Positions 1 to 37,748 of a stretch of 64,000 nt of DNA are shown in pieces; position 1 is the first letter of the stretch, and each line of letters starts with the position of its first letter. The notes beneath the pieces were generated by a model, which made no database searches, was not told where the DNA came from, and saw nothing but the letters and a program-made list of their open reading frames with translations. Source of the stretch: Oculina patagonica (lineage: Eukaryota); contig NC_135767.1 of NCBI RefSeq assembly GCF_052425735.1, positions 6,138,001-6,202,000 on the forward strand, written 5' to 3'. A program made the position numbers and the translations under genes.

Positions 1-620
1 TGCTGAACAATGTTTACACAGTCATTGCAGCTTCAGGTTATATTTTATGTGGAGTATCTGTCTTAACATCGACCGCAATAAGTGTGGACAGACTTCTCGC
101 ACTGTTGCTGGGACTGAGATACAAGCAAGTGGTAACATTGAGGCGAGTTCGTGTAGTCATAACTTGTTTTTGTTTAATTGCTGCTATACTTGGAGGGCTC
201 CGAGGGTGGAGAAGAGATATTGCAATTAAGGCAGCCTCTGTTTTCAATTCACTTTGCGTGGCAACTTCCATTTTCTGTTACACGAAGATCCACCTCAAGC
301 TACGACATCAACAAGCCCAAGTACAAAACAATGTCCCCCACGGACAACAGAATGGAGAAGGAACGCCACTAAACATAGCAGGATACAAAAAGACAGTTTC
401 CAGCATTATGTGGGTGCAGTTGGCATTAGTTGCCTGCTATGTTCCGTGGGTGATTGTGGCTGTGCTGGATGCGAATGGTATTGAACATTACGTTGCTTGG
501 CTAGCTACACCAACTCTGCTTTTGTTAAACTCATCTCTAAACCCGATCTTGTACTGTTGGAAAATCAGGGAAGTGAAACAAGCAGTTAAAGGCACAATCA
601 GGCAGCTTTACTTTTTTTAA
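1..620 (+). CDS. Class A GPCR array copy 1 (5' end outside the window; TM3-TM7)
   Basis: Open frame with [16 protein letters not shown] (TM3/ICL2), CYVPW (TM6), [11 protein letters not shown] (TM7); paralogous to the other copies. Confidence 0.9.
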   Translation, partial: LNNVYTVIAASGYILCGVSVLTSTAISVDRLLALLLGLRYKQVVTLRRVRVVITCFCLIAAILGGLRGWRRDIAIKAASVFNSLCVATSIFCYTKIHLKLRHQQAQVQNNVPHGQQNGEGTPLNIAGYKKTVSSIMWVQLALVACYVPWVIVAVLDANGIEHYVAWLATPTLLLLNSSLNPILYCWKIREVKQAVKGTIRQLYFF

Positions 621-1174
621 AAGCCTAGCTGTGTAAACCAACATTAAGTTGAAAAGTGAAATCGACAGTGTCTAAATGGTGCGAAAGAGTAGCTTAATTT
701 ATTTCTTGCAATGTTCACAATTGCTTTCGAATCAAATTGGAAAAGATATGGATTGAGACAAGCTAGATTACGAATGATAAACTGCATAATTTATAAGACT
801 TTGGACGAAGATTCGCCTTCCATTACGCATCCATTTTGGAGCAAACGTAAAGCAGTTCCTTTGTTTGCTTTTGTTTTAACTTTAATTTAGCTATCATTCT
901 TAAGCACTGATAAGAAAACTTAAATTAATTTAGGCGCGAGGTTAGGTTTCACAACATACATTAACAGTTTATGTCGGTTCCTCTTTGGATGAGGGCAAAT
1001 CTATAATATTATTACCTATACCAGAGTTGAAACTTGCTGTTGCGAACAGTTAAGTCTACATAGGGGTCTATAATCAAGTAAATTTAATCACTTGTATGAA
1101 AAGATAACACAGAACGTTCGAGAAAAGAAATGTCATTAAAAATTGAACTGCAACCAGGATGAGACATGAAAAAA

Positions 1175-1276
1175 AAAAAATATGAGCTTTCGGCTATTTT
1201 ACTTTCTCTCCTTTTTTTTTTTTTTTTTTGCATTCGTCAAAGGCTATAGTAAAATAGCCGAAAGCTCATATTTTTT
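1175..1276. repeat. Inverted repeat, 29-bp arms around a T-rich spacer (MITE-like remnant)
   Basis: aaaaaatatgagctttcggctattttact (1175-1203) is the reverse complement of 1248-1276. Confidence 0.7.
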
Positions 1277-1417
1277 CTTAACTTTTTAAACCAGAGAACG
1301 CTATTTTACACTTTTAAAAGAAATGTCAGTTCATTCAGGTAAAATAAAATTGTGCAAAGTTCGTGTATTTGTCGAAGGCAGCGTCCACGAAGTAATCAGA
1401 CCCAAAACTCTATTTAA

Positions 1418-2696: not shown

Positions 2697-3035
2697 ATGA
2701 CGAACTTTACTGGAGAAGGAAACTACACAAGCAAACTAAATCAAGTACTAAACACACAGCCAGCAGGCATAGTTGAATTTTTGACAGCTTTGAACATTTT
2801 TCTTTCCATCACCGCTGCTGTGGGCAATGCTCTGATCCTTATGGCTCTCTGCTATGTTCCTTGGATGGGTGCGGCTGTACTAGATGCAGATGAAATTAAA
2901 CATTACGTGGCTTGGTTAGCTACGTCAACTCTAATCTTCTTAAACTCAACCCTTAACCCGATTTTGTACTGTTGGAAAATCAGGGAAGTGAAACAAGCAG
3001 TTAAAAGCACAATCAGGCAGCTTTACTGTTTTTAA
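2697..3035 (+). pseudogene. GPCR copy 2 with an in-frame internal deletion of about 191 codons (end of TM1 joined to TM6)
   Basis: ...GNALILMAL is fused directly to CYVPW...NPILYCW; 112 aa versus 303 aa in intact paralogs. Confidence 0.85.
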
Positions 3036-9586: not shown

Positions 9587-10495
9587 ATGGCGAACTTTAC
9601 TGGAGAAGGAAACTACACAAGCAAACTGAACCAAGCACTCAGCGCACCACCAGCAGGCATAACCGAATTTTTTTCAGCTTTGAACATTTTTCTTTCCATC
9701 ACCGCTGCTGTGGGCAATGCTCTGATCAATTTTGCTCTGAAGAATGTCTCTTCTATTCATCCTCCGACAAAACTTTTCTTTCGATGTCTGGCAGTCACTG
9801 ATCTTTGCGTTGGTCTTATTATACAACCACTCTATGCTGCCTATATTATGTCTCCTAAGATCAAGATGAACGTGAATGTGCTGTATTATGCTAGCCAAAT
9901 CTATGGAGCTTCAAGTTATATTTTGTGTGCAGTATCTGGCTTGACATCGACAGCAATTAGTGTGGACAGACTTCTCGCACTGTTGCTGAGACTGAGATAT
10001 AGGCATGTCGTAACATTGAGGCGAGTTCGTGTAGTCATAACTTGTGTTTGGCTAATTGCTGCTTCATGTGGTTTGTTCCGGGTGTGGAGAAGAGATATGG
10101 ACATTGCGGCAGCCTTTGTTGGCTTAATACTTTGTCTGGCAACTTCGATATTCTGTTACACGAAGATCCACCTCAAACTACGACATCAACAAGCCCAAGT
10201 ACAAAACAATGTCCCCCACGGACAACAGAACGGAGAAGGGAATCCACTAAACATAGCAAGATACAAAAAGACAGTTTCCAGCATTATGTGGGTGCAGTTG
10301 GCATTTGTTGCCTGCTATGTTCCGTGGGGCATTGTGACTGTGCTGCATGTGAATGGAATTGAACATGATGTTTATTGGTTGACAGAAACTTTGGTCTTGT
10401 TAAACTCATCTCTAAACCCAATCTTGTACTGTTGGAAAATCAGGGAGGTGAAACAAGCAATAAAAGGCACAATCAGGCAGCTTTACTGTTTTTAA
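9587..10495 (+). CDS. Class A GPCR array copy 4 (302 aa)
   Basis: Intact 7TM ORF with DRL, CYVPW, NPILY. Confidence 0.93.
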   Translation: MANFTGEGNYTSKLNQALSAPPAGITEFFSALNIFLSITAAVGNALINFALKNVSSIHPPTKLFFRCLAVTDLCVGLIIQPLYAAYIMSPKIKMNVNVLYYASQIYGASSYILCAVSGLTSTAISVDRLLALLLRLRYRHVVTLRRVRVVITCVWLIAASCGLFRVWRRDMDIAAAFVGLILCLATSIFCYTKIHLKLRHQQAQVQNNVPHGQQNGEGNPLNIARYKKTVSSIMWVQLAFVACYVPWGIVTVLHVNGIEHDVYWLTETLVLLNSSLNPILYCWKIREVKQAIKGTIRQLYCF

Positions 10496-12702: not shown

Positions 12703-13613
12703 ATGACGAACATAACTGGAGAAGAAAACTACACAAGCAAACTGAATCAAGCACTCAGCGCACCACCAGCAGGCATAGCTGAATTTTTTTCAGCTTTGAA
12801 CATTTTTCTTTCCATCACTTCAGCTGTGGGCAATGCTCTGATCCTTATGGCTCTGAAGAATGTCTCTTCTATTCATTCTCCGACAAAACTTTTCTTTCGA
12901 TGTCTGGCGGTCACTGATCTTTGCGTTGGTTTTATTGTACAACCACTCTATGCTACCTACATCATGTTTAGTATAATAAAGATAAACGTGAATGTGCTGA
13001 ACAATGTTTACACAGTCATTGCAGCTTCAGGTTATATTTTATGTGGAGTATCTGTCTTAACATCGACCGCAATAAGTGTGGACAGACTTCTCGCCCTGTT
13101 GCTGGGCTGAGATACAGACATGTCGTGACATTGAGGCGAGTTCGTGTAGTCATAACTTGTTTTTGGATAATTGCTGTTATATTTGGATGGCTCCGGGTGT
13201 GGAGAGAAGATATCGCCTACAAGGAAGCCTCTGTTATCTTACCTCTTTGCCTGGCAACCTCCATTTTTTGTTTTACGACGATCCATCTCAAACTACGGCA
13301 TCATCAAGTCCTAGTACAAAACAATGTCCCTCACGGACAACAGAACGGAGAAGGGATTCCACTAAACATACCAAGATACAAAAGGACAGTTTCCAGCATT
13401 ATGTGGGTGCAGTTGGCAGTAGTTGCCTGCTATGTTCCGTGGGGCATTGAGACTGTATTATATGCGAATGGAATTGAACATATTGTTGCTCGGTTAGCCA
13501 CAGATACACTCATCTACTTCAACTCAACTCTAAACCCAATCTTGTACCGTTGGAGAATCAGGGAAGTGAAACAAGCAGTTAAAGACACAATCAGGCAGCT
13601 TTACTGTTTTTAG
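12703..13613 (+). pseudogene. GPCR copy 5, 1-nt deletion frameshift in ICL2
   Basis: ctgggctgaga at about 13102-13112 versus ctgggactgaga in paralogs splits the 7TM into two ORFs (12703-13110, 13041-13613). Confidence 0.8.
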
Positions 13614-15871: not shown

Positions 15872-16786
15872 ATGGCAAACTTTACTGGAGAAGGAAACTA
15901 CACAAGCAAACTGAACCAAGCACTCAGCGCACCACCAGCAGGCATAGCTGAATTTTTTTCAGCTTTGAACATTTTTCTTTCCATTACCGCTGCTGTGGGC
16001 AATGCTCTGATCCTTGTGGCTCTGAAGAATGTCTCTTCTATTTATCCTCCGACAAAACTTTTCTTTCGATGTCTGGCGGTCACTGATCTTTGCGTTGGTC
16101 TTATTGTGCAACCACTTTATGCGACCAGCATTTTGTCTGTTATAATAAAGATGAACGTGAATGTTCTGTACTACGTTCACAACGTTTGGGGAGCAACAAC
16201 TTTTATTTTATGTGGCGTATCTGGTTCGACGTCGTCAGCAATTAGTGTGGACAGACTGCTCGCACTGTTGCTGGGACTGAGATACAGACATGTCGTAACA
16301 TTGAGTCGAGTTCGTGTAGTCATTACTTGTTTCTGGCTAATTGCTGCTTCAGGTGGATTGCTCTGGGTGTGGAGAAAAAAGATCGCCAACATGGAAGCCT
16401 CTGTTTTATTAATACTTTGTCTGGTAACTTGCATTTTCTGTTACACGAGGATCCACCTCAAACTACGACATCAACAAGCCCAAGTACAAAACAATGTCCC
16501 CCACGGACAACAGAACGGAGAAGGGAATCCACTAAACGTAGCAAGATACAAAAAGACAGTTTCCAGCATTATGTGGGTGCAGTTGGCATTAGTTGCCTGC
16601 TATGTTCCGTGGGGTATTGTGGCTGTGCTAGATGCGAATGGAATTGAACATGAACTCGTGACTTTGTTTACTACAGAAACACTAGTCTTTCTAAACTCAT
16701 CTCTAAACCCAATCTTGTACTGTTGGAAAATCAGGGAAGTGAAACAAGCAATAAAAGGCACAATCAGGCAGCTTTACTGTTTTTAA
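15872..16786 (+). CDS. Class A GPCR array copy 6 (304 aa)
   Basis: ATG at 15872 ([10 protein letters not shown]) matches paralog starts; the track's upstream TTG start is not used by other copies. Intact 7TM. Confidence 0.93.
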   Translation: MANFTGEGNYTSKLNQALSAPPAGIAEFFSALNIFLSITAAVGNALILVALKNVSSIYPPTKLFFRCLAVTDLCVGLIVQPLYATSILSVIIKMNVNVLYYVHNVWGATTFILCGVSGSTSSAISVDRLLALLLGLRYRHVVTLSRVRVVITCFWLIAASGGLLWVWRKKIANMEASVLLILCLVTCIFCYTRIHLKLRHQQAQVQNNVPHGQQNGEGNPLNVARYKKTVSSIMWVQLALVACYVPWGIVAVLDANGIEHELVTLFTTETLVFLNSSLNPILYCWKIREVKQAIKGTIRQLYCF

Positions 16787-19173: not shown

Positions 19174-19210
19174 CAGCACAAGAGGGCGTGTTATCAGCGA
19201 CATATAAAAT
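19174..19210 (+). promoter_or_regulatory. Putative core promoter (GC-box-like GGGCGTG plus TATA-like CATATAAA), representative of all array copies
   Basis: A similar motif pair lies about 110-150 nt upstream of the ATG of copies 2-10 (about 2550, 3856, 9439, 12571, 15742, 19174, 22670, 31738, 36693). Confidence 0.55.
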
Positions 19211-19323
19211 TATCATCCCAAAAACTAAGCTGCAATTTGATACCTTGTTCCTCAAAAGATTGTACCTTCCTGAACTTCAAGCACTTTCCAAGGCAAGCTT
19301 AACTTTCTGACCACCAAAGAACA

Positions 19324-20235
19324 ATGGCGAACTTTACTGGAGAAGGAAACTACACAAGCAAACTGAATCAAGCACTCAGCGCACCACCAGCAGGCATAGT
19401 TGAATTTTTTTCAGCTTTAAACATTTTTCTTTCCATCACCGCTGCTGTGGGCAATGCTTTGATTCTTTTTGCTCTGAAGAATGTCTCTTCTATTCATCCT
19501 CCGACAAAACTTTTCTTTCGATGTCTGGCGGTCACTGATCTTTGCGTTGGTCTTACTATGCAACCACTCTACGCCACCCGCATTATGTCTCGTATTATAA
19601 AAATGAACGTGAATGTGCTGTACTATGTTCAGAAAGTCAATACAGCTTCAAGTTTTATCTTATGTGGAGTATCTGGCTTGACATCGACAGCAATTAGTGT
19701 GGACAGACTTCTCGCACTGTTGCTGGGACTGAGATACAGACATGTCGTAACATTGAGGCGAGTTCGTGTAGTCATAAGTTGTTTCTGGCTAATTGCTATT
19801 CCAATTGTATTGCTCCGAGTGTGGAGAGAAGATATTACCTTTAAGGCAACCTCTGTTTCCATAATACTTTGTCTGCTTACTTCGATTTTCTGTTACACGA
19901 GGATCCACCTCAAACTACGACATCAACAAGCCCTAGTACAAAACAATGTCCCCCACGGACAAGAGAACGGAGAAGGGATTCCACTAAACATAGCACGATA
20001 CAAAAAGACAGTTTCCAGCATTATGTGGGTGCAGTTGGCATTAGTTGCCTGCTATGTGCCGAGGGTGATTGTGGGTGTGCTGTATACGAATGCAACAGAA
20101 CATTTTGTGGCTTGGTTCGCAGCAATGACGCTAGTCTACTTAAACTCATCTCTAAACCCGATCTTGTATTGTTGGAAAATTAGGGAAGTGAAACAAGCAG
20201 TTAAAGGCACAATCAGGCAACTTTACTGTTTTTAA
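19324..20235 (+). CDS. Class A GPCR array copy 7 (303 aa)
   Basis: Intact 7TM ORF; CYVPR variant and an NAT sequon in ECL3. Confidence 0.93.
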   Translation: MANFTGEGNYTSKLNQALSAPPAGIVEFFSALNIFLSITAAVGNALILFALKNVSSIHPPTKLFFRCLAVTDLCVGLTMQPLYATRIMSRIIKMNVNVLYYVQKVNTASSFILCGVSGLTSTAISVDRLLALLLGLRYRHVVTLRRVRVVISCFWLIAIPIVLLRVWREDITFKATSVSIILCLLTSIFCYTRIHLKLRHQQALVQNNVPHGQENGEGIPLNIARYKKTVSSIMWVQLALVACYVPRVIVGVLYTNATEHFVAWFAAMTLVYLNSSLNPILYCWKIREVKQAVKGTIRQLYCF

Positions 20236-22818: not shown

Positions 22819-23731
22819 ATGGCGAACTTTACTGGAGAAGGAAACTACACAAGCAAACTGAACCAAGCACTCAGCGCACCACCAGCAGGCATAGTTGAAT
22901 TTTTTTCAGCTTTGAACATTTTTCTTTCCATCACCGCTGCTGTGGGCAATGCTCTGATCCTTTTTGCTCTGAAGAATGTCTCTTCTATTCATCCTCCGAC
23001 AAAACGTTTCTTTCGATGTCTGGCGGTCACTGATCTTTGCGTTGGTCTTATTACACAACCACTTCATGCTACCTACATTGTGTCTAGTATAGATAAAGAT
23101 GAACGTGAATGTTTTGTACTATGTCAACAAAGTTTATGGAGTTTTAGGTTATATTTTATGTGGAGTATCTGCCTTGACATCGACAGCAATTAGTGTGGAC
23201 AGACTTCTCGCACTGTTGCTGGGACTGAGATACAGACATGTCGTAACATTATGGCGAGTTCGTGTAGTCATAACTTGTCTGTGGTTAATTGCTGCTATAG
23301 TTGGATGGCTCCGGGTGTGGAGAAGAGATATCGCGAATAAGGAAGCCTCTGTTGTTTTAATACTTTGTCTGGTAACTTCCATTTTCTGTTACACGAGGAT
23401 CCACCTCAAACTACGACATCAACAAGCCCTAGTACAAAACAATGTGCCCCACAGACAACAGAATGGAAATGTGATTCCACTAAACATAGCAAGATACAAA
23501 AAGACAGTTTCCAGCATTATGTGGGTGCAGTTGGCATTAGTTGCCTGCTATGTTCCGAGGATCATTGCCTTTGTGCTATATGCGAATGGAATTGAACACG
23601 ACGTGGCTTGGCTAGCTACATCAACTCTGGTCTTGTTGAACTCATCTCTGAACCCGATCTTGTACTGTTGGAAAATAAGGGAAGTGAAACAAGCAGTTAA
23701 AGGCACAATCAGGCAGCTTTACTGTTTTTAA
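22819..23731 (+). pseudogene. GPCR copy 8, +1 frameshift in ECL1
   Basis: agtatagataaagatg (extra G at 23092) versus agtataataaagatg in paralogs; ORFs 22819-23193 and 23099-23731. Confidence 0.8.
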
Positions 23732-25272
23732 AAGACTAGCTGTCAGGCCCAAGCTGTGTAGATCGACATAGAGTTGCAAAGTGCAATTGACACCCTCAGA
23801 ATAGCGTGAAAAAGTAGCTAAATTCATTTCTTGCAATGTGCAAAGCTGCCTTCAGTTCTAATTGAACTGGTAGAGATTGAGACAGCGCTAAATTACGAAC
23901 GATAAACTACAAAACTGTAGACAAAGATGCGCCTTCCATTCCGCATCTATTTGGCGCAAATAGCGAAACAACAAATTTATTTGACTCAATTTAGCTATCA
24001 TGCAAAGCCACCGATTAGAAAATTTTAATAAATGTAGACGGGTTAACTGGCATTAGGTTAGGTTTCACAACAGTCATTTAACAGTTTGAGGTTATGCCGA
24101 TTCCTCTTTGGATGGGGGCAAATCTCTAATATTATGACCTATACCAGAGTGAAAACGTTTCCTAGCAGTTAGGTTTTATAACTAATTATAAGCATGCTAA
24201 GTCCGTGCTATGTATTGTGTTTTGTGGTACATATGTATGATAACAGAAAGTTCAGTTAATTCAAGTGAATTATAAAATGAAAAAAATGTACAACGTTGAA
24301 TTGTCCATCTTTTGATGGCAAGAAATTCATCAAACCCAAAACTTGTATTTCAAAAACAGTTTTAACGAGTTTTTTACCTCATGAACAATCTTTTAGTAGT
24401 AGTAGGCATCAGTAAGCTCAGTGAAGGTTCTGTTTCAGTGGAACGACATTAATGTTCCAGTTAGATTTAAACAACTCTCGCAGGAATAAGCGACCAGAGA
24501 AGACGAATGAAATTTCAGCCATCATTGTTTGAATAATGGTATTTAAAACGTTAACATAATGCTCGATTCTCATTAATTCTCCGTGCGCCTATTTTTCTCA
24601 TAATTGGCTCGCGGTGCGAGTGTCTCATCCACCTAACAGAAAAACATGGCGGCTGTACATTTTACGGCAATAAAACTCAACCCAAGTTAAGAATGACGTC
24701 ATGTAACTAAAGACTAAGCCAAACTTAATGAAGTTAACAGTGTCGAATTTTTTTTCCCGCAGTTTCGCTTTTCCCTGGGTCTCCGAGGATGCACCAAAAC
24801 TTGTTTTTGTATGGTTAGAAACAGAAAGGGTTACTCAGAAATAACGAGACAGCCTATCCACGAGTAATGAAAGTATTAGATAAAAGGGAAAGTTAACGTC
24901 CTAGTTAATGAGGATTTGCCATAAAAAGACAGGTGTCCTCATCTGCAATAATTTTTCCGAACTGTCATTATGTAGGCTAGTGAGTGTAGGCTACACTCTT
25001 TTTTTAATATAAGAAGGTCTAATTTTTTGGCCTGGACTGAACGTCCTTAACTTTTTCGGAGTTTTGAGCCTGAAATCTTCTTAGAATGTTCTTATTTTTT
25101 TTTTAAAAAAAAGTAGTATTGCAGTAAATTCATTCCTAACAGATATGTACATGTTCACGTCACCAATGAGTGATGCCAATATTGGTTACAAGTCAGGACT
25201 GGGCCGAGGTATGGCGCCGTGAAGAACGTGCTTATCTCCGCTCGCAAAAAATTCGCTATTTCTTGGAAGTCA

Positions 25273-26238
25273 ATGGCGGAATCTTTGCTAAAATACGTAT
25301 CAAAAAGAAGGAACCGATCCTCCGACAGCTCGACGGATGGAAAAGTGGATTCTCCAGCAATGAAAAAAGTAAAAAACACAAGCGCTCCCGAGTCTTCGCC
25401 GCCACGCGAGGAACATGGCGAACATAACGATGACAGCGACCTTGTGCTGACCGCGCTCGAACTAACGGACGATCTTAATGGAACTCTAAAATGCATCCTA
25501 GAAAAGCTCAAGAAGCTGGATACCATTGAAAACGCCGTTAAAAAAATTGAAGGCAGCTTGGACAAATTAGAAAGAAGAACAGGGATACTTGAAGAATTCG
25601 AGAAGACGGCGAGAGAAGATATCGAGAACCTAAAGTCAAACCACATGCTGATTGAAAAGAAACAAGATGGCGATAAAAAGGCCTTAGACAAAAAGATCAA
25701 AGGTATTGAAGGGAAAATAGCCGAACTAAAAGTCAAGGAGGGAGAAATTGACCAAACTTTAAAAGACCTCAACACGAAAGATTTATATTTAGAAGCTTAC
25801 TCGAGACGCGAGAATATAAAATTTAACAACATCCCTGAATTTCCTTCGCCGAGAAATGGTTTAGAAGACACAGAAGAAGTGCTTAGATCCTTCCTGGAAA
25901 AGCAGCTGGGCTATCATGATGCAAGTTCTGTGGAGATTCAAAGAGTTCATCGACTGGGGAGAAAGAAAGAAGATGGAGGAGCGCGGCCAATTCTTGCCAG
26001 ATTCCTTCGCTTCAAAGATTGCGAGAAAATTCTCGGTCTTGGCTCCCGTCTCAGAGGTACGAATTTCCAGATGTTTAAGGATCTCCCTCAAGAACTGGTG
26101 ACCAGAAGACGTGAACAAATGGATACCTTCAAGACGGCAAAACGAAATAATATTCCCGTATCCTTTAGCAAATCACAACCGGACAAACTATATGTAAGAG
26201 GTAAACTTTGGCCAGTTGGCCAGGTGCTGGACATCTAA
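25273..26238 (+). CDS. LINE ORF1p (coiled coil plus L1-type RRM/CTD)
   Basis: First in-frame ATG at 25273; heptad region followed by EAYSRRENIKFNNIPE, IQRVHRLG, RPILARF and FKDLP motifs typical of L1 ORF1p. Confidence 0.88.
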   Translation: MAESLLKYVSKRRNRSSDSSTDGKVDSPAMKKVKNTSAPESSPPREEHGEHNDDSDLVLTALELTDDLNGTLKCILEKLKKLDTIENAVKKIEGSLDKLERRTGILEEFEKTAREDIENLKSNHMLIEKKQDGDKKALDKKIKGIEGKIAELKVKEGEIDQTLKDLNTKDLYLEAYSRRENIKFNNIPEFPSPRNGLEDTEEVLRSFLEKQLGYHDASSVEIQRVHRLGRKKEDGGARPILARFLRFKDCEKILGLGSRLRGTNFQMFKDLPQELVTRRREQMDTFKTAKRNNIPVSFSKSQPDKLYVRGKLWPVGQVLDI

Positions 26239-26706
26239 TGGAGCAAACTCCTCGTAAACCCTTTCTTTGTTCTTTCTAGTTTTTGCTCTTTACCACCCTT
26301 GAGCTAAAACTTTTTTCGCCACTTTTTATAAGGACATTGTAGAATTTTGCGAGCGGAGAGAGCTGCTGAAGAACACCGAAAAACCAAAAGCTCACTCTTA
26401 AACTAATTGCGTGTTTAATCTTCCCTAACTGTTGCTTGTCGTCGCTCTGTATGTTGTCGCTTTTTTCCTTGCTTCCAACGTTTTTTTGCTCGTACGCTAT
26501 GTGTAGCTTAAGTTTTCACTTATATTCCATTTGTAATTTTTTTGTTATTTATTTATTTCTTTATTTCTGCAGCAAAGTTAATTTTGTCTTCCAATGGTTA
26601 TATGCTAATGTCGAACCAGTATTTTTAAAGCATGTGGTCATTTTGAGACCGTTATTTATAAAAATGCAAATCAGTCATCACAATCTCTTTTACTTCACAT
26701 AATATA

Positions 26707-29700
26707 ATGGATCTGAAATTAGCTTCCCTTAACGTCAGGGGATTAGGAAACAATACAAAAAGGAGAGAGGTGTTCAATTGGTTGAGAGAGAAAAAGCAAT
26801 CTATATATATGCTGCAAGAGGTTCATTGTTCTGAAGACACTTCGGAAATATGGGCTAATGAGTGGGGCTACAAAGCGCTTTTCAGCTGCTGCAGCAGCAA
26901 AAAAGCGGGTGTTGGCATTCTTTTTTATAACAACTTTAATCTTCAAATTCAAAGGGTTTTTTCAGATCCGAATGGTCGCTTTATCATATGTGATATCGTT
27001 GCTAATGGAAAGAATCTTACCGTGGCTAACATATACGCACCTAACGAAGACGATCCAAATTTTTTCCAGCTTTTTTTTGATCATTTATCTAGCTTTAAAT
27101 GTGAGGAAATTATAATCGGTGGGGACTTTAACTTAGTTCTTAATACTGAAATAGACAAAAAGGGCGGCCTTGCCAGAACACACAAAAATGCCTTAAAAGT
27201 GATTCGAGATTTCTCTGAAAATCTTGGTTTGACCGATGTCTGGAGAACGCTAAACCCGGAGGTTAAGAGATATACTTGGCGCCAAAACAAACCCGTCATA
27301 CATTGCCGACTCGATTTTTTCCTATTAAGCGAATCATCTTTATGTGATGTTACTCATGCAGACATTGTTCCTGGCTTTAAAACAGACCACTCAATGGTCA
27401 CCCTAAACTTATCTCTACACTCTAACCCCAGGGGAAAAGGTTTCTGGAAGTTGAACACTTCTCTTTTGTCTGAAATCAGATATATTGAAGAAATCAAAAC
27501 AACAATTAATATCACCGTGAACCAATACAAGGATGACACAACGGTGAATCCGGCTCTTCTTTGGGAAATGATCAAACTAAAAGTGCGAGAAAAAACAATA
27601 TCCTACGCCGCGTACAAAAGCGCAACTACAAAGAAACAAGAAGAAGCACTAGAAAGTGAAATCGCCTTGTTAGAAAATCAACTGGATAATGCAGAAAATA
27701 ACAACCCCTTATATCACATCGTCGCAGAAAGAATTACCACCTTAAAGAAAGATCTAGAAAAAATCATTGAGTATCGTACTAAAGGCGCTATCATTAGATC
27801 AAAGTCGCTATGGTACAACGAGGGCGAAAAGAATTCAAAATATTTCCTAAATCTCGAAAAGAGGCACTGTAAACATGGAACAATAAGTCAATTAAAAGTC
27901 AGTGACAGCGACTTTGTAACCACGGATAAAGCTATTTTATCTGAATGTACAGATTTTTATAGAAACCTCTACACGTCCAAAATCCCAGACTGCTTTCAAT
28001 CATCAGTGTTCGCCAAAGTAAACACCACTTCATTGACTCAAGAAGAACAAACCCTCTGCGAAGGAAAATTAACTCAAAAGGAATGTTTTGAAGCGCTGAA
28101 GAATATGAATCCCGACAAAACACCAGGCACTGATGGATTTCCCGCTGAATTTTACAAAGTCTTTTGGAAAGATATCGCCCCGTTTTTGATCTCGGCCCTC
28201 AATTATGCTTTTGACTCTGGTTGCCTCTCAGTTTCACAAAGGCGAGGGGTCATAAAGCTTATCCCAAAAAAGGATGCGGAACTTTACTTCATCAAAAATT
28301 GGCGGCCCATTACTCTTCTTAATACTGATTACAAAATTGCCGCAAAATCTATCGCAAATCGAATTAAACGCGTCCTCCCAAACCTTATTAACCACGATCA
28401 AACAGGATTTTTAAAAGGCAGATTTATAGGTGAAAATATTCGGCTTATCGATTGCATCATCCAATATGCCACAGAAAAGAACATTCCGGGCCTACTTCTT
28501 TTCATAGACTTCGAAAAGGCTTTTGATTCTCTTGAATGGTCCTTCATATATGACACTCTAAGAACCTTCGGCTTCGGTGCTTCGCTCACTAATTGGGTAA
28601 AAACTTTATATAACAATACCGAAAGCTGTGTTCTAAACAATGGCTGGGCTAGCGATTTTTTTGAAATTCAAAGAGGTGTTAGACAAGGCTGCCCACTGTC
28701 ACCATATCTATTCATTCTATCGGCAGAAATTTTGGCCATCGCGATAAGAAACAATACAAATATAAAGGGAATCTCTGTAAACGATGAGGAAATTAAGATA
28801 AGTCAGTACGCCGATGATACAACACTAATTCTTGACGGGTCTCATGAATCTCTCTTTTCATCTCTTGCAATGCTTGATGAATTCAGCAAAGTCTCTGGCC
28901 TCAGGCTCAATGACAAAAAAACTGAAGCCCTATGGATCGGTGCAAGTATTGGAAATGACAAAATCGTGCTACCAGGAAAAGAACTCAAATGGCCAAAAAA
29001 CAAGGTAAAAACCCTAGGGCTATGGATCTCTACAGACCCCGAACTATCTGTTTCTTTAAACTACAGCGAGAAACTTGAGAAAGTTAAGGAAATGTTAGGA
29101 TGTTGGAAATACCGCAGGCTCACCTTGTTAGGTAAAATCACTGTAATCAAGTCATTAGTAGTCTCTCAACTGGTTTATTTACTCTCTCCCCTTTGCTCAA
29201 ACCACAATGTCATTAATGAAATTAACAATCTGCTTTATAACTTTCTGTGGAACGGTAAAGGCGACAAGATTAAGCGAAAAGTTATGATAAACGATTTTGG
29301 TAATGGTGGCCTAAAAATGATTGACATTATCTCCTTCAATAAATCTCTTAAGACCACCTGGATTAAAAAATATTTAGATAACAGTAACAGCGGAAAATGG
29401 AAAATCTTCTTCGATATAGCTCTCGAAAAATATGGCTGCCAAAACTTTTTTTCTTGCAACCTCAGCGCTAGAGACACCTTAGCGACAATAACAACTTCTG
29501 ATGCCTTTTTAAAAGAAATATTAGTTATTTGGGCAGAAGTTAACTTTGAGCCTGAAATAACATCTAAAGATCGTTTTTTGGACCTGCCACTTTGGTATAA
29601 CTCCCTTATAAAAATAGCAAACAAGCCAGTCTTTTTTAAAAAATGGTTCACAAAAGGAATTACCATGGTAAAACATCTTCTCGGTCCAGACACAAACACC

Positions 29701-30471
29701 TTTCTATCGCAAAAAGATTTCTACTCAAAGTATGGATTGGATCCTCGCCCTCTAAGTTTCTACGGATTAATATCGGCGGTAAAGTCCCTTCGGGCTAAAT
29801 CTAACTTCCGAGATGTACAGAAAACCAACTGCGACCATGTGCCACTCACAACAAAAATTCTACAGGCCCAAAAGGCAACTTCAATAGTATACAATAAACT
29901 GATTAGCAACAAAAGTCTAACGCCAGAATTAAGTCAAAATAAATGGCTAGAAGACTGTAACCTACCAATAGAGGTTAATATAAATTGGACCGCTGCCTAC
30001 GTCTTGGCTAAGAAATGCACCAAGAGTACTAAACTTATTGAATTTCAATTCAAACTCCTACATAGACGCGTGTCAACCAATACCTTCTTAACTAAAATAG
30101 GTCTAAAAGATAAAGAAAACTGCAGCTTCTGTCACTCCTCCCCAGAGACATTAATTCATCTTTTTTGGTTATGCGACAAAACATCACACTTCTGGAAAGA
30201 AGTTATCAAATGGCTAGAAAACGTAAATTTACTGCCTAAAGACTACAACTTATCAAATGCCACTGCTTTGGGGCTGAGGCCAGACAATTCTCAATCTGCA
30301 CTTTTAATCAACTACTGTCTTCTCTTAGCACGATATCACATATGGCTAACTAAAACAAAGGAAATGTACCCAAACTTAACGTATTTCATATGTCTACTCA
30401 AATCTTATCGTGAAATAGAAACAGAAAGTGGAGAAATTAAAAAATGGAAACCTTTTGCGGGATACATATAG
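26707..30471 (+). CDS. LINE ORF2p: APE endonuclease, reverse transcriptase, C-terminal CCHC zinc finger
   Basis: SLNVRGL, LQEVH, NIYAPN, GGDFN, RLDFFL, TDH (endonuclease); WRPITLLN, IDFEKAFD, RQGCPLSP, QYADD (RT); CSFC...HLFWLC. Confidence 0.97.
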   Translation: MDLKLASLNVRGLGNNTKRREVFNWLREKKQSIYMLQEVHCSEDTSEIWANEWGYKALFSCCSSKKAGVGILFYNNFNLQIQRVFSDPNGRFIICDIVANGKNLTVANIYAPNEDDPNFFQLFFDHLSSFKCEEIIIGGDFNLVLNTEIDKKGGLARTHKNALKVIRDFSENLGLTDVWRTLNPEVKRYTWRQNKPVIHCRLDFFLLSESSLCDVTHADIVPGFKTDHSMVTLNLSLHSNPRGKGFWKLNTSLLSEIRYIEEIKTTINITVNQYKDDTTVNPALLWEMIKLKVREKTISYAAYKSATTKKQEEALESEIALLENQLDNAENNNPLYHIVAERITTLKKDLEKIIEYRTKGAIIRSKSLWYNEGEKNSKYFLNLEKRHCKHGTISQLKVSDSDFVTTDKAILSECTDFYRNLYTSKIPDCFQSSVFAKVNTTSLTQEEQTLCEGKLTQKECFEALKNMNPDKTPGTDGFPAEFYKVFWKDIAPFLISALNYAFDSGCLSVSQRRGVIKLIPKKDAELYFIKNWRPITLLNTDYKIAAKSIANRIKRVLPNLINHDQTGFLKGRFIGENIRLIDCIIQYATEKNIPGLLLFIDFEKAFDSLEWSFIYDTLRTFGFGASLTNWVKTLYNNTESCVLNNGWASDFFEIQRGVRQGCPLSPYLFILSAEILAIAIRNNTNIKGISVNDEEIKISQYADDTTLILDGSHESLFSSLAMLDEFSKVSGLRLNDKKTEALWIGASIGNDKIVLPGKELKWPKNKVKTLGLWISTDPELSVSLNYSEKLEKVKEMLGCWKYRRLTLLGKITVIKSLVVSQLVYLLSPLCSNHNVINEINNLLYNFLWNGKGDKIKRKVMINDFGNGGLKMIDIISFNKSLKTTWIKKYLDNSNSGKWKIFFDIALEKYGCQNFFSCNLSARDTLATITTSDAFLKEILVIWAEVNFEPEITSKDRFLDLPLWYNSLIKIANKPVFFKKWFTKGITMVKHLLGPDTNTFLSQKDFYSKYGLDPRPLSFYGLISAVKSLRAKSNFRDVQKTNCDHVPLTTKILQAQKATSIVYNKLISNKSLTPELSQNKWLEDCNLPIEVNINWTAAYVLAKKCTKSTKLIEFQFKLLHRRVSTNTFLTKIGLKDKENCSFCHSSPETLIHLFWLCDKTSHFWKEVIKWLENVNLLPKDYNLSNATALGLRPDNSQSALLINYCLLLARYHIWLTKTKEMYPNLTYFICLLKSYREIETESGEIKKWKPFAGYI

Positions 30472-31870: not shown

Positions 31871-33721
31871 ATGGGGAAATTTTCTGGAGTAGGAAACTAC
31901 ACAAGCAAACTGAACCAAACACTCAACGCACCACCAGCAGGCATAGTTGAATTTTTTTCAGCTTTGAACATTTTTCTTTCCATCACCGCTACTGTGGGCA
32001 ATGCTCTGATCCTTGTGGCTCTGAAGAATGTCTCTTCTATTCATCCTCCGACAAAACTTTTCTTTCGATGTCTGGCGGTCACTGATCTTTGCGTTGGTCT
32101 TATTGCACAACCACTTTTTGCGACCCTCAGTTTGTCTTTTATAATAAAAATGAACGTCAATGTGCTGTACTACGTTAGCAACGTTTGGGTAGCTTCAGCG
32201 TTTATTTTAAGTGGCGTATCTGCCTTGACGTTGACAGCAATTAGTGTGGAGAGACTTTTCGCACTGTTGCTGGGACCCAGATACAGACATTTCGTAACGT
32301 TAAGGCGAGTTCGTGTAGTTGTAACTTGTCTCTGGATAATCGCAACTGTAAGTGGATTGCTCCGGGTGTGGAGAAGCGATATCGCAATTAAGGTCGCGGG
32401 GGACACCTTAGGCTCATCATTATGCATTTATTTAAAGCGTATGCACGAAGTGCAACGACTCACATCGACAACTTTACGAGATATTTATGACTGGAGAAAA
32501 ATATGGGCGCGTGCGCGTGATTTGTAAAAAATCCCTGTTTCTTTGATATTTTAACCAATTTAAAACAACACTTAGCGATATACGTTCATATAGATTGTAG
32601 GAAGTCTTTGAGCTTATTTTTATTTAAATTTGACTATTTCTGCAACTAGTGTACTCAGAGTAATCACAAAAATATTCGGCATAAACAATCGTGTCCTTTT
32701 TGAAAACGCATTGTTCTCACCATAAAAGCGTGGAATATAATTACCATAATTACATCTCTCCTTGGCAAAATGATCGTATTTAGGTCGGGACACCTTCGGA
32801 AATCTCAAAGTTTGGACTTTTCCGACAATTTTGTGGCAGAGAATACAGCGCGGATACAGAACTTCATGACTTGCCACTGCAGATAGGTAAACTATGAATA
32901 CTGTAGTGTGTCATAACAGAAGCGGAATTTTAAAAGAGCGCTTTTAGAAAGAGGTAGAAGACGTTAAATTCAAATTTGCGCACTTAAACCGCCATAACTT
33001 GCTGGCAAACTTTAAATTAAAAAATCTGCTTCTGTTATAACACTCTAGAGGTATTGACTGATTAGTTTTTGACAAAATCGCAGTGTGCTGTCTTCTACTC
33101 GTTCCGCAAACTCTGCCACAAAATCATTTTTTTCCCAATTTGGCACTAACGAGGCTATAACATCGCCGTAAAATGCAATCTACCAAATAAAAGATGACAT
33201 TCACAATCTTTCATCATTTCGTTATGTCTCTGTAAATTTGAGCTTAATCGCACCCATAACAGCCGAGAAATAAGCGTTTTAAAGGATGCAGGTCAAGCAA
33301 AATTTCCCTTCATGAATTTATTCATGCTGTTGGTATCCCCCGCGACCTTAAGGCAGCCACTGTTGTCTTAATACTTTGTCTGTTTACTTCCATTTTCTGT
33401 TACACGAGGATCCACCTCAAACTACGACATCAACAAGCCCAAGTACAACAAAACGGAGAAGGGATTCCACTAAACATAGCAAGATACAAAAAGACAGTTT
33501 CCAGCGTTATGTGGGTGCAGTTGGCATTAGTTGCCTGCTATGTTCCGTGGGGCATTGTGATTGTGCTAGATGTGAATGGAATTGAACATGATGTGGCTTG
33601 GTTCTCTTCGTCAACTCTAGTCTTCTTAAACTCATCTCTTAACCCGATTCTATACTGTTGGAAAATGCTAGAAGTTAAGCAATCAGTTAAAGGCACAATC
33701 AGGCAGTTTTTCTGTTTGTAA
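31871..33721 (+). pseudogene. GPCR copy 9, interrupted by a MITE at the ECL2/TM5 boundary
   Basis: The frame ...SDIAIK resumes as AATVVLILCLF after 33351. Also a 21-nt in-frame ICL3 deletion near 33447 and DRL changed to ERL. Confidence 0.88.
32392..33347. mobile_element. Kolobok-like non-autonomous DNA transposon (956 bp)
   Basis: TTAA TSD (32388-32391, 33348-33351); 16-bp TIR ggtcgcgggggacacc / ggtatcccccgcgacc. TTAA with purine-purine (GG) ends fits Kolobok rather than piggyBac. Confidence 0.88.
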
Positions 33722-34106
33722 AAGACAAGCTGTGTAAATCGACATAAAGTTGCAAAGTACAACTAATAGTCTTAATTTGCATCTTGCAATGTTGCTTTTA
33801 AATTGTATGAAAAATATTGAGAAAGCGCTAGATTACGAACGATAAATTGTAAAACTGTAAACAAAGATGCGCCTTTTGTTATTCATCTATCTGGCGGAAA
33901 TAGTGAAGAAGCAACTTTGTTTAACTTTCATTTAACTATCTTGCTAAGCCACCGATGGGAATATTCTAATAAATGTAACCGCGATGTTAGGTTTCACAAG
34001 TTTAATCCAGTTTTAACTCTGGTAGTCATTGGGTATCCGGTCATTTCGAAACAAGCTTACGTTACTTGAAGTCCTTTCGATGCAAAATACCATACTATAT
34101 ATTAAA

Positions 34107-34582
34107 TAGATTTAGCCAAGCCTAAAAGTGGAGCTCCCCTGTTATTTACTTTGCCCTTTTCGAAAATCCGAATTTACTTAACGATAACAGGAAAAAAATA
34201 AAGCAGTTGAGCCCGTGATCCAATTTAAACCATTACATGGCCAGCGGTAAATTTAAAAAAAAAACATTCGACCTCGATGATTTCTATATGTGAGCCCGCG
34301 ATGTGATACTGGTCAGCGGATACCTTGTTTTGACAGCTGTCAATTGACTATGACATGTATTTCCAATATCAAAGATGTAAGCTGACGTTAACCATAACCT
34401 TAAACCTATTTCTGGAGTATGGCCCCCATGTTGGGGTGACGTCGTCGCTTGGGCGCACGCGCCCGCGAACCATGCCCCTAGCAATAATGACCATGAATAA
34501 CCAAAAATATGGGTCTGTTAATTTTCTATGGGTATGGGGCTCTGCTCTGCGGCCCTTGCGGCCGCTGGGAGCTCCGCTATAA
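34107..34582. repeat. Interspersed repeat related to the element at 4982
   Basis: Shares the atagatttagccaagcct start and the tcagcggatac...gttttgacagctgtcaattgac core. Confidence 0.6.
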
Positions 34583-36836
34583 ATGGCCAAACATACCTTC
34601 GAAGACACTTGCTCAAACGAACATAAACCTCCGTTAAAAATGAAAACAAGCCATACCTCCTTGAGAAACAAACGTATGTACCCAAGCCTCCTCCGCAATG
34701 AGAACACACAAACGAGACCAAGGGTGCATTTCTTTGGGAGAACCAAAATTGGATCATTGATCTTAGTTCACGCGGATACTTTGCTCCTATTAAGTTCTCA
34801 AAGACTTTCTAATCATTCTAACCTCGAAAATTGCTCACAATTTTTAAATTTTTAAAATAACAAATTACCCATGCCAGTTACTTTTATTATTTCCAAAAAA
34901 TTATTTATAATTTATTACTTATAATAAAATATACTGATTACTTCAGTCAACTGAATTGCCTGAAAGTCAATGAAAAGTTTTATTTATTTGTTATTTATTT
35001 GTTGCCTTAATGGTTTATTTTTTGTACATGTTCGGGACTTATGATTATGATTCATAATCTCTCAGCGCCTGAGCAGTCGGTTGAAATATCTTGTCAAACG
35101 ATTGGACTTCTTTGAAGGAGGGATCTGCAAAAAAGGAGAAAACATAAAGATAGGAGCATATCAGTGTCTCATTAATCAATACATAATATAGCAAAAGTTA
35201 AAGTATAACTTACTAAAGCGCACGTTTTGGTTGGGTAAGTTAGCGTTTACTTTTGGCCTATTATTTTGGTATACGCATGCAAATGCCTTCCAGGTTCAAC
35301 TTTAGCGCGCGCGCTGATTTGACGCGACATGGCGCAAGCAATCAACGCGGTGCCTTCTGAAATATTGGAATTTAGTATACTTCTCACACCGTTTAATCAG
35401 CCTTGCGTTTTATCTTGTGAAATTGTTGCCCGCAGCCACGAACGTAAAATATATTTAAGCAGACTGGTCCGTATGCCTTTTCTTTTGTTTATTTGTGACC
35501 GTGCAAAGCCTGGGATTGTGACGTCACCGCTCTTATTAGAGCCCAGACTCCCTTTAGCTAAGCTTGGCTGAGTTGAAGTAAGAGTCCATGTTTCTTTCCT
35601 ATAGCACAACGCTTCGCACCTCAACAAATCACAAGGACATCTGCTGCACTCGAAATAACTACCAACTATATCAGCTCACCTCTACAACATAAGCACTCTT
35701 ATTATTCAACAGATGCGCGCGCTGCCCATATATGGTCAAAATGTTAACGATATCTGTCATCCGTACATAACAGATATCCTGCGATATTCGTAAGTTGCGA
35801 AAATTCGTCCGAAATCTTGTAAAGTGCTGCACAATTACAGTTTTTTAATGTGCAAAATGTGTTCCGTTGACAATTTGTTGAATAATAAAACAATTATCCT
35901 GCTCAATCTTGCGGAATATCGTCTGATTTTAGCTAAGTATCAGGCGATATTCCGCGCGATTTCGCAGGATAATTGTTAAATAGTGGCTAAGGTTCTATTT
36001 CATAATTAATGAAAGAAACTACGATTAAAGTCGAGAAGGTGGAAATAATCCGGTTTGCATTAGAACTCAGTGAAATTATTTCCGGGAGTCGTACTGCTGT
36101 GAAACATTCTGGAAAAAATGACTTTCATTTTACAAAGTTTTTATTTCCATTGCAGGTTTCTAAAATAATAAACTGCTAGCTGGTGAAGTCTCGCATAATT
36201 TATTTTTAAGTTGTCAAGTCTTGGAAGTATATACAAATATACCACCAGTCGATAGCATCTTAACGTCAACACGGGCTGCGAAAACACGCTCTAATTATCC
36301 ATCGAACGTTGCATGATGATTGATCGTTTGAATTAACGACAGAGAACGTTTCGAGCAAACGGTCCAGTCGAGGTAAAAAGTGAATATGCCGCAGGCCCCT
36401 AACATTTTAGCGAGCAGTCGCAACCTTAATAAACGTGTACAGACGAAACGTTTTTCTAGGAAAGGCATTTTCAAGTTTCGTGATTACGGGAAAATTAAAT
36501 TTCCATTTCAGATCACCTGCACTTATTGACTCATTTCACGCTACCAGAGTGCGCAACAACAAAATTGTTAATTTTGTCAAAGACAACAAACCTTACCCTT
36601 AATTTTTCACAGGGATTTAGAATTTCTAGCAGAGCTGACCTATTTTTTCCAGAATATTCTTAAACATCGACTAAGTTTAGATACACTTTGTCAGCACAAG
36701 TGGGCGTGTTATCAGCGACATATGAAATCATCATCTCAAATAACAAAGCAGGAACCTGATAATATTAAACCTTCGGAACTTTCTCAACTTCAAGCACCCT
36801 TTCAGATAAGCGTAATTTTTTGACTACCCAAGAGCA

Positions 36837-37748
36837 ATGACAAGCTTTACTGGAGAAGGAAACTACACAAGCAAACTGAACCAAGCACTCAGCGAACCAC
36901 CAGCAGGCATAGTTGAATTTTTTTCAGCTTTAAACATTTTTCTTTCCATCACCGCTGCTGTGGGCAATGCTCTGATCCTTGTGGCTCTGAAGAATGTCTC
37001 TTCTATTCATCCTCCGACAAAACTTTTCTTTCGATGTCTGGCGGTCACTGATCTTTGTGTTGGTCTTATTGTACAACCACTGTATGCTACCCGCATTATG
37101 TCTCGTGTAATTGAGATGAACGTGAATGTGCTGTACTACGTTCTGAACGTTTGGCGAGCTTCAGGTTTTACTTTATGTGGCGTATCTGCCTTGACCTCGA
37201 CAGCAATAAGTTTGGACAGACTTCTCGCCCTGTTGCTGGGATTGAGATACAGACATACCGTAACATTAAGGCGAGTTCGTGTAGTCATAACTTGTTTCTG
37301 GCTAATTGCTGCTTCATGTGGATTACTCCGGGTGTGGAGAAAAGATATCGCCATTGAGGCAACCTCTGTTGTCTTAATACTTTGCCTGCTAACTTCCATT
37401 TTCTGTTACACGAGGATCCACATTAAACTACGACATCAACAAGCCCAAGTACAAAACAATGTCTCTCACGGACAACAGAATGGACGAGGGATTCCGCTAA
37501 ACATAGCAAGATACAAAAAGACAGTTTCCAGCATTATGTGGGTGCAGTTGGCATTTGTTGCCTGCTATGTGCCGAGGATCATTGTGGCTGTGTTTTTTGC
37601 CAATGCAACAGAACATTTCGTTGCCTGGAAAGCTTCAACAACTCTAGTCTTATTCAACTCCTCTCTAAACCCGATCTTGTACTGTTGGAAAAACAGGGAA
37701 GTGAAACAAGCAGTTAAAGGCACAATTAGGCAGCTTTACTGTTCTTAA
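36837..37748 (+). CDS. Class A GPCR array copy 10 (303 aa)
   Basis: Intact 7TM ORF; DRL, CYVPR, NPILY. Confidence 0.93.
   Translation: MTSFTGEGNYTSKLNQALSEPPAGIVEFFSALNIFLSITAAVGNALILVALKNVSSIHPPTKLFFRCLAVTDLCVGLIVQPLYATRIMSRVIEMNVNVLYYVLNVWRASGFTLCGVSALTSTAISLDRLLALLLGLRYRHTVTLRRVRVVITCFWLIAASCGLLRVWRKDIAIEATSVVLILCLLTSIFCYTRIHIKLRHQQAQVQNNVSHGQQNGRGIPLNIARYKKTVSSIMWVQLAFVACYVPRIIVAVFFANATEHFVAWKASTTLVLFNSSLNPILYCWKNREVKQAVKGTIRQLYCS

Follow-up and report, generated by a model that had tools for sequence, protein, structure and literature searches.

The ten receptor genes at the start of the Oculina patagonica window (CM126644.1, 6.138-6.202 Mb; the window is the whole 64,000-nucleotide stretch that was analysed) probably mark the distal limit of a large tandem array of orphan G protein-coupled receptors (GPCRs), which has been shaped by birth and death, gene conversion and selection at a few positions of the ligand pocket. 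The copies are class A (rhodopsin-like) GPCRs and recombinant mosaics. Their amino-acid variation is concentrated in the extracellular half, and in two variable blocks out of three the silent sites vary along with it.

A tandem receptor cluster

All ten copies were located at positions 1-37748, on the plus strand and each in a single exon, according to blastn and the ORF listing (Table 1). Blastn found the 38-64 kb part of the window to be without additional copies, which makes copy 10 (c10) the last gene of the cluster. The cluster itself spans at least ~5.998-6.176 Mb, i.e., at least 180 kb; upstream loci contain 4-6 further copies each, and dozens of paralogues with 75-85% identity were found on the same O. 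patagonica chromosome. Six copies were intact, including c1, whose gene begins 292 nt ahead of the window and encodes 303 aa (full ORF read at L003:5706-6617). The remaining four are broken, as had been noted. A 573-nt in-frame internal deletion in c2 fuses the N-terminus and TM1 to TM6-TM7-H8 and the C-tail, c5 and c8 are frameshifted, and c9 is divided in two by a 956-bp insertion and carries a deletion. The broken status of c5 and c8 depends on one single-base indel each, for which an assembly error is possible. The LINE-type element between c8 and c9 has two open frames, ORF1 (339 aa) and ORF2 (1254 aa), the latter with endonuclease, reverse transcriptase and zf-RVT domains.

An alignment of nine 5' flanks showed that roughly 150 bp upstream of the start codon were duplicated with every copy. 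This flank contains a TATA-like ATAT[A/G]AAAT motif 103-122 nt upstream of the ATG and is a putative core promoter.

Table 1. Receptor copies and associated elements, in window coordinates
Feature	Position	Strand	Basis or remark
Copy 1 (c1), TM3 to stop, 3' two-thirds	1..620	+	blastn; truncated by window start
Copy 2 (c2), remnant, 112-aa ORF	2697..3035	+	blastn, ORF listing
Copy 3 (c3), intact, 303 aa	4004..4915	+	ORF; Pfam PF00001 (7tm_1) E=2.4e-19
Copy 4 (c4), intact, 302 aa, one-codon deletion at TM7 start	9587..10495	+	ORF
Copy 5 (c5), full length, frameshifted	12703..13613	+	1-nt deletion at codon 135, DRL/ICL2 block
Copy 6 (c6), intact, 304 aa, one-codon insertion in ECL3	15872..16786	+	ORF
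Example 5' flank (copy 7), putative promoter	19174..19323	+	alignment of nine 5' flanks, motif positions
Copy 7 (c7), intact, 303 aa, R6.51, ECL3 NAT sequon	19324..20235	+	ORF
Copy 8 (c8), full length, frameshifted	22819..23731	+	1-nt insertion near codon 92
LINE-type retrotransposon, c8-c9 spacer	25219..30471	+	Pfam PF03372, PF00078, PF13966
Copy 9 (c9), 5' part, N-terminus to ECL2	31871..32391	+	blastn
Non-autonomous DNA transposon inside c9	32392..33347		16-nt terminal inverted repeats, TTAA target-site duplication
Copy 9 (c9), 3' part, TM5 to stop	33348..33722	+	blastn; 21-nt deletion in ICL3
Copy 10 (c10), intact, 303 aa, R6.51, ECL3 NAT sequon	36837..37748	+	Pfam PF00001 E=7e-23

Receptor fold and loops

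Class membership was supported by Pfam 7tm_1 (PF00001), with scores of 70.3 bits for c3 and 81.8 bits for c10 (cutoff 30.5), and by the class A core motifs GNALI, AVTDL, DRL, CFW, CYVP and NPILY, which aligned with those of beta1AR and MC4R. They cover N1.50, D2.50, the (D/E)R(Y) positions 3.49-3.51, W4.50, P6.50 and NPxxY. Variants of these motifs included L at 3.51, Y at 6.48 and the absence of P5.50. An AF2 model of moderate confidence (pLDDT 65) placed the helices at residues 25-53, 59-92, 96-133, 144-167, 169-208, 220-254 and 261-285, followed by H8 at 287-300. Foldseek matched this model to the aminergic and adenosine receptors beta1AR, A2A and alpha1A (E ~4e-9, TM ~0.6). Only 3, 1 and 6 residues were left for ECL1, ECL2 and ECL3, respectively, in agreement with the very short ECL2 that had been noted, and the model suggests an unusually open, nearly loop-less ligand pocket.

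Ballesteros-Weinstein anchors were set using the motifs and HMMER alignment to beta1AR and MC4R. With this numbering, we recovered the residue series noted at 3.25 (Y, F, S, Y, H, Q, N, S, L), the W/R switch at 6.51, directly after P6.50, and the ECL3 NAT sequon confined to c7 and c10. The disulfide between Cys3.25 and ECL2 is typical of class A, though not universal. It was absent here: in 21 paralogues position 3.25 was occupied by eight residue types, never Cys, and ECL2 has about one residue.

Variation, conversion and selection

With outer and inner segments delimited by topology and not by variability, 72 of 101 columns in outer TM2-TM7 and the ECLs were variable vs 78 of 203 elsewhere (p=7e-8), and four or more residue types occurred in 22 of 101 vs 1 of 203 columns (p=9e-11). 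Likewise, dN was 0.23-0.245 in outer and 0.05-0.06 in inner regions. The same pattern recurred in 21 intact paralogues and 80 family proteins, and the concentration of variation in the ligand-facing half that had been noted was thus borne out. The backbone had also been described as almost invariant; this is true of its dN (only ~0.05), but 50 of 203 columns varied even among the six intact copies. Omega was 0.29-0.34 in inner regions and 0.23 in TM7i/H8, where intact copies are under strong constraint; the overall value (0.58) is high by GPCR standards. The low inner values, together with the broken copies, fit the predicted birth-and-death family with a constrained cytoplasmic face.

Silent sites gave a more complex picture. 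In TM2o-ECL1-TM3o and TM6o-ECL3-TM7o, dS was 2-3 times higher, matching flank divergence; dN was raised as well, and omega was 0.66, significantly below 1. The expectation that variability is driven by amino-acid replacement therefore failed in two of three variable blocks. The third, TM4o-ECL2-TM5o, combined high dN with low dS (omega 1.42), and as a block was not significantly above 1 (p=0.06). Four-fold divergence was 0.03-0.14 in backbone blocks vs 0.30-0.40 in non-coding flanks; in the comparison with blocks B and E (0.23-0.28) and TM7i (0.41), backbone blocks stood at 0.09-0.11.

Recombination was detected in several ways. The PHI test was significant (z about -5.6, p<0.001), and block trees were mutually incongruent, each rejecting the other (AU p<0.01). 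c1 and c5 were identical over 83 consecutive polymorphic sites (p<0.0005) and nearly identical over codons 1-130. Also, c6 shared 97% identity, confined to the CDS, with a copy 140 kb upstream. Taken with the low silent divergence of the backbone, these signals point to gene conversion, and the difference between a homogenised backbone and old, unconverted cassettes accounts for much (about half) of the block contrast.

The low backbone silent divergence ended close to the CDS boundaries. Conversion alone offers no obvious reason for this, and nucleotide-level selection is possible. Dual coding over ICL3 is unlikely, since alternative-frame ORFs were open in four copies only.

Selection at individual sites was analysed with purpose-written FUBAR-like code, not PAML or HyPhy. 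Site mixtures required a class with omega>1: when dS was set per block, 2dlnL was 119.8 vs a null maximum of 12.8, and when it was set per site, 22.8 vs 7.7, with 60 parametric bootstraps in each case; these tests treat blocks as free of internal recombination, which can inflate them. About 7% of sites fell at omega ~3-6 (2.8-5.6). In a FEL-like per-site test, no site passed Bonferroni correction (best p 0.001-0.009). Candidate selected sites were 2.64, 3.25, 3.28, 4.56, 4.60, 5.36, 5.46 and 7.39, and selected sites were found in 10 of 138 positions on the extracellular side vs 1 of 165 on the intracellular side (p=0.003). At pocket positions defined a priori, which we assigned by generic numbering based on class A structures in general and not from coordinates, omega was 1.42 vs 0.79 at other outer-helix positions (p=0.0017). 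Selected sites 1.32, 4.55, 5.36 and 5.52 lay outside canonical pocket positions. The original prediction of diversifying selection thus holds in part: the omega>1 class and the pocket enrichment speak for it, whereas block omega (at most 1 in two of three, p=0.06 in the third) and the non-pocket sites do not. On this codon evidence, a diversifying signal that appears real remains at a few positions in the pocket and on its rim.

Origin of the block pattern

We suggest that the array arose through duplication of units that would each bring their own short promoter-like flank, with copies lost through single-base frameshifts, internal deletion and transposon insertion. Frequent conversion among paralogues, together with purifying selection, has probably homogenised the N-terminus, TM1, cytoplasmic halves, ICLs and helix 8, silent sites included. 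The cassettes TM2o-ECL1-TM3o and TM6o-ECL3-TM7 would retain old divergence of neutral level and sometimes transfer between copies as blocks; TM4o-ECL2-TM5o would change chiefly by amino-acid replacement, and selection would have diversified a few pocket-rim and pocket positions. The copies may bind different, probably exogenous ligands, such as chemical, microbial or symbiont cues. A single signalling output had been read from backbone conservation; because the sameness includes silent sites, conservation alone is insufficient for this. A shared G-protein pathway as coupling partner of all copies is likely. A further reading, which we regard as tentative and somewhat unlikely, is that conserved blocks serve as recombination handles, with conversion re-assorting TM2o-TM3o, TM4o-TM5o and TM6o-TM7 among dozens of paralogues. 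If true, new ligand pockets would be built combinatorially in the germline on one signalling chassis and, in a nearly loop-less receptor, be set by helix-end modules only.

Relaxed constraint could produce a similar pattern if outer halves drifted near neutrality in a redundant, decaying family, with the backbone maintained by conversion and purifying selection and no adaptive diversification of ligand binding. The omega of 0.66 with flank-level dS in two variable blocks, the four broken copies of ten, the high overall omega and the lack of sites past Bonferroni are all consistent with this. However, mixtures limited to omega<=1 were rejected far beyond the 60 bootstrap nulls, the high-omega sites were in excess at canonical pocket positions, TM4o-TM5o combined high dN with low dS, and intact copies are still constrained elsewhere (e.g., TM7i/H8), so that we consider relaxed constraint alone unlikely. 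Still less probable is a mainly mutational or nucleotide-level origin of the block contrast, through RNA/DNA-sequence selection on conserved blocks (for structure, regulation or a recombination signal) or mutation hot spots in the variable ones, and with a minor role for conversion. It would explain why low four-fold divergence stops near the CDS boundaries, and also the 54-nt segment of highest conservation (residues 228-246), with a third-position diversity of 0.07, but it is at odds with the direct recombination signals (PHI, block trees, the c1/c5 tract and the c6 CDS).

The dense tandem arrays, ~40% pseudogenes, transposon insertions and rapid turnover seen here are features that chemosensory or immune-type families typically show. 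They argue against endogenous peptide or hormone receptors, i.e., an expanded clade of cnidarian neuropeptide receptors co-evolving with their ligands and not reading the environment. Dozens of near-identical backbones carrying hypervariable pocket residues, and best sequence and fold matches to aminergic and adenosine receptors (alpha group) and not to peptide-receptor clusters, also weigh against such a clade. The open, loop-poor pocket without the 3.25 disulfide does resemble peptide-binding MC4R, and lineage-specific expansion of cnidarian peptide GPCRs has been documented (PMC11087051); even so, we find this origin quite improbable. The preferred reading of birth and death, conversion and limited selection carries a caution for such arrays: conserved and variable blocks are not readable as selection without checks of silent sites and recombination. 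It also yields testable candidate specificity positions (the eight listed above), on near-isogenic natural variants of one backbone that are suited to deorphanisation and swap experiments.

Comparison with known receptor families

In the databases, homologues from O. patagonica carry the names "adenosine A3-like" or "melanocortin-like", which are similarity labels and not orthology. Melanocortin receptors carry DPxxY in TM7 and an acidic Ca2+/ligand triad (E2.60, D3.25 and D3.29 in MC4R structures); the copies have NPILY, L/I at 2.60 and hypervariable 3.25 and 3.29. Adenosine receptors conserve N6.55 and link ECL2 to 3.25 by a disulfide. Here, 6.55 showed four residue types in 21 paralogues, and A, T, G, F and I once the broken copies of the window were counted; ECL2 is nearly absent and there is no C3.25. 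A vertebrate-type olfactory receptor (OR) was also rejected: Pfam PF13853 (7tm_4) gave c10 29.2 bits (cutoff 27) over profile positions 4-119 of 280 only and did not match c3, and the long Cys-bearing ECL2 is missing, with about one residue in its place. In pairwise HMMER comparisons, MC4R aligned over the full length with E about 1e-12, on a par with beta1AR and 5-HT1B. MC4R (PDB 7piu/7aue) is alike in its very short ECL2, lack of the Cys3.25-ECL2 disulfide and lack of P5.50, but at ~20-25% identity it is no better a match than beta1AR, and it ranked 44 in Foldseek.

The genes are orphan, coral-lineage-specific class A receptors, a typical fast-turnover family and not a new kind of system. 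They show the operational traits of chemoreceptor-type expansions: single-exon genes clustered in tandem, pseudogenes among them, and variability in the half that forms the ligand pocket. ORs, too, are known to undergo gene conversion within their clusters, and corals have hundreds of tandem-amplified orphan GPCRs. Vertebrate ORs and TAARs and the echinoderm and lophotrochozoan expansions (PMC11886862) likewise form single-exon tandem clusters with many pseudogenes, keep the DRY/NPxxY core and have an extracellular pocket half that combines high entropy with signs of positive selection. Their loops are much longer, with 25-30 aa in ECL2 and 15-20 aa in ECL1 and ECL3 (PMC11886862), vs ~1, 3 and 6 residues in ECL2, ECL1 and ECL3 of the Oculina copies, which lack OR signature motifs. 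Tandem GPCR amplification in corals has been published: of the domains found in coral orthogroups amplified in tandem, the rhodopsin-like GPCR, of unknown function there, occurs most often (Noel et al. 2023, Genome Biol, PMC10236652). The 34 orthogroups reported there resemble the array in being coral rhodopsin-like GPCRs, tandemly duplicated and genus- or species-specific. That study gives counts and tandem status only, whereas block structure, mosaicism, minimal loops and site selection are findings from Oculina.

Organization of the receptor cluster

The window corresponded to 6,138,001-6,202,000 of Oculina patagonica chromosome CM126644.1 (GC 0.33-0.44, eukaryotic). A blastn search of the whole window with one copy as query revealed ten homologous units (c1-c10) on the + strand within 1-37748, and no further units past 37748 in the window. 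Upstream loci contained 4-6 more copies per 20 kb, reaching at least 5.998 Mb; thus, the ten copies make up the end of a cluster that extends over at least 180 kb, with c10 as the final gene. The single-base frameshifts in c5 and c8 could be assembly errors. The public annotation probably errs in deriving one spliced gene model from parts of c1 and c2, each of which would be a single-exon unit of its own. Dual coding by the alternative-frame ORFs of c4-c7 was considered and rejected, as c3, c8 and c10 had no such ORF of ≥100 aa; low divergence probably accounts for those in c4-c7.

Features of the window
Feature	Position	Strand	Description
c1	1-620	+	Truncated by window start; intact ORF once read in L003, a sequence overlapping the window start
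c2	2697-3035	+	112 codons left; in-frame 573-nt deletion
c3	4004-4915	+	Intact single-exon ORF, 302-304 aa
c4	9587-10495	+	As c3
c5	12703-13613	+	Frameshift, 1-nt deletion, codon 135
c6	15872-16786	+	As c3
c7	19324-20235	+	As c3
c8	22819-23731	+	Frameshift, 1-nt insertion near codon 92
c9	31871-32391, 33348-33722	+	Interrupted by 956-bp element; 21 nt also missing
c10	36837-37748	+	As c3
Annotated spliced gene	about -291 to 3035 (L003:5706-9032)		299 aa; 5' part of c1 with 3' part of c2
Alternative-frame ORFs	10042-10362, 13076-13450, 16327-16647, 19869-20183	+	104-124 aa; overlap TM4-ECL3 part of c4, c5, c6, c7
3' flanks of c4 and c6	10496-10989, 16787-17280		98% identity, 494 bp
Tandem repeats	18655-18950		~104-bp units, 90-95% identical, upstream of c7
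LINE-type retrotransposon	25219-30471	+	Between c8 and c9; ORF1 and ORF2 both open
Non-autonomous DNA transposon	32392-33347		956 bp; splits c9 at ECL2/TM5
ORF	54017-55795	-	592 aa, multi-pass membrane; no Pfam match at E≤0.01

Each copy had an alignable 5' flank of ~150 bp, with a TATA-like motif 103-122 nt ahead of the ATG. The 150-bp 5' flanks of c4 and c8 were identical, and the CDSs of c4 and c6, whose 3' flanks are nearly so, were only ~89% identical; these flank identities imply that the flanks have a mosaic history of their own. Relatives of the ~104-bp repeat units were also found upstream of c4, c8 and c9. The LINE was apparently intact, with a 1254-aa ORF2 containing Exo_endo_phos, RVT_1 and zf-RVT domains and a 339-aa ORF1 with no Pfam match. 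It may be a recently active element within the receptor cluster. Terminal inverted repeats of 16 nt (GGTCGCGGGGGACACC...) bounded the transposon in c9, next to a duplicated TTAA target site, which is piggyBac-like; no second copy was found among the loci fetched.

The receptors matched Pfam 7tm_1 far over threshold. In HMMER alignments against PDB sequences, their DRL, CYVP and NPILY motifs lined up with those of beta1AR and MC4R, which fixed the generic (Ballesteros-Weinstein) residue numbering. The AF2 model (pLDDT 65, moderate) had seven helices, helix 8 and strikingly short loops (3, 1 and 6 residues in ECL1, ECL2 and ECL3).

Variation, silent sites and recombination

When the protein was split by helix anchors, and not by variability, dN was 0.23-0.245 in the outer TM2-TM7 halves and ECLs vs. 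0.05-0.06 in all other segments, which confirmed the block pattern of the original prediction; every residue it had quoted was also correct. Columns with at least four residue types numbered 22 of 101 in the outer regions and 1 of 203 elsewhere. The N-terminus and outer TM1 were outside the variation, and the least diverse 54-nt window in these data encoded residues 228-246 in TM6. The outer-versus-rest pattern was repeated in 21 intact paralogues and in 80 family proteins.

However, this pattern is not the result of positive selection alone, because silent divergence was heterogeneous too. Four-fold divergence, taken from codon pairs for the same amino acid, was 0.086, 0.093 and 0.111 in blocks A (residues 1-74), C (126-200) and D (201-242), vs. 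0.232 and 0.277 in blocks B (75-125) and E (243-303), and reached 0.41 in the NPxxY segment, which is invariant at the protein level. Non-coding flanks diverged by 0.30 (5') and 0.40 (3'), so blocks B and E match neutral divergence, with the backbone below it. The paralogues are recombinant mosaics. PHI was 0.450 vs. 0.490 ± 0.007, and the data of every block rejected the trees of other blocks (46-292 lnL units) as well as the whole-gene tree (37-39 lnL units), with AU p<0.01 in all cases. For example, c1 and c5 were identical at 83 consecutive polymorphic sites (codons 69-130) spanning the hypervariable TM2o-TM3o cassette (o, outer helix half), and past this tract diverged like unrelated copies. 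In the case of c6, 97% identity to a copy located 140 kb away was confined to the CDS, the flanks being unrelated past ~160 bp. The near-identical outer blocks and differing backbones of c6 and its upstream partner g6013497 were considered as proof of backbone-only conversion, and this was dropped: 15 of 27 differences were singletons and 7 were beside an indel, so the pair was taken only as evidence for a CDS-limited long-range copy event.

We infer that the backbone would be homogenised by conversion and purifying selection, and that two outer cassettes would hold old divergence and now and then move as blocks. Selection at the nucleotide level could also act on the backbone, since low silent divergence stops near the CDS boundaries. 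A second assembly (ERZ25067872) was consistent with either conversion or slow silent-site evolution: for the five copies compared, between-source distance was similar to within-source distance in every block (net 1-3%). This net divergence suggests that its source is a close relative and that paralogues are largely trans-specific. In that assembly (ctg20851, 74.9-95.8 kb), an array of the same kind packed five intact copies into 20 kb, and the closest Oculina copy was 11% diverged.

Tests for diversifying selection

Segment omega values, estimated by maximum likelihood with nucleotide trees per block and a custom GY94-type likelihood, were 0.66 in both TM2o-ECL1-TM3o (p=0.005, below 1) and TM6o-ECL3-TM7o (p=0.014, below 1), 1.42 in TM4o-ECL2-TM5o (p=0.06 vs. 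omega=1), and 0.23-0.46, below 1, in backbone segments. The original prediction of diversified ligand recognition had named synonymous and non-synonymous changes raised alike in the variable blocks, with omega at or below 1, as evidence against it; raised dS and dN with omega below 1 were observed in two of the three blocks. On the other hand, a custom FUBAR-like alpha/beta grid, with one tree per block and recombination inside blocks left out, required a beta>alpha class: 2dlnL was 22.8 when alpha was site-specific and 119.8 when it was set per block, vs. null maxima of 7.7 and 12.8 in 60 parametric bootstraps each, with trees re-inferred every time. This class had omega 2.8-5.6 at ~7% of sites. 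The best-supported sites were ECL1-90, 2.64, 3.25, 3.28, 4.55, 4.56, 4.60, 5.36, 5.46, 5.52, 7.39 and 1.32, and no site survived Bonferroni correction in a FEL-like test. Selected sites were concentrated on the extracellular side (10/138 vs. 1/165 on the intracellular side, p=0.003). In addition, mean omega in the outer helix halves was 1.42 at a priori canonical class A pocket positions, set by generic numbering and not by structure coordinates, vs. 0.79 in the remainder (p=0.0017). The prediction was partly supported: by the site class and pocket enrichment, and not by the omega of two variable blocks.

Comparison with known receptor families

Foldseek top matches were aminergic and adenosine receptors, with MC4R at rank 44, and the family did not show the defining features of melanocortin, adenosine or olfactory receptors. 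The array genes are an orphan, coral-expanded class A family, and their database names are similarity labels; any function assigned to them (ligand, cell type and coupling) is putative. In literature searches, neither this family nor the nuclear genome of O. patagonica was the subject of any paper found. Rhodopsin-like GPCRs have been reported as the commonest domain in tandemly amplified coral orthogroups, with function unknown (Noel et al. 2023, PMC10236652). Tandem, single-exon, pseudogene-rich class A expansions with variable pockets are the established chemoreceptor-type signature in vertebrates, echinoderms and lophotrochozoans (PMC11886862). Those families have a long ECL2, whereas loops were nearly absent in the AF2 model of the Oculina receptors, which is the sole unusual structural trait of this family. 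The array is a well-resolved further case of an established type of system, and not a novel type.
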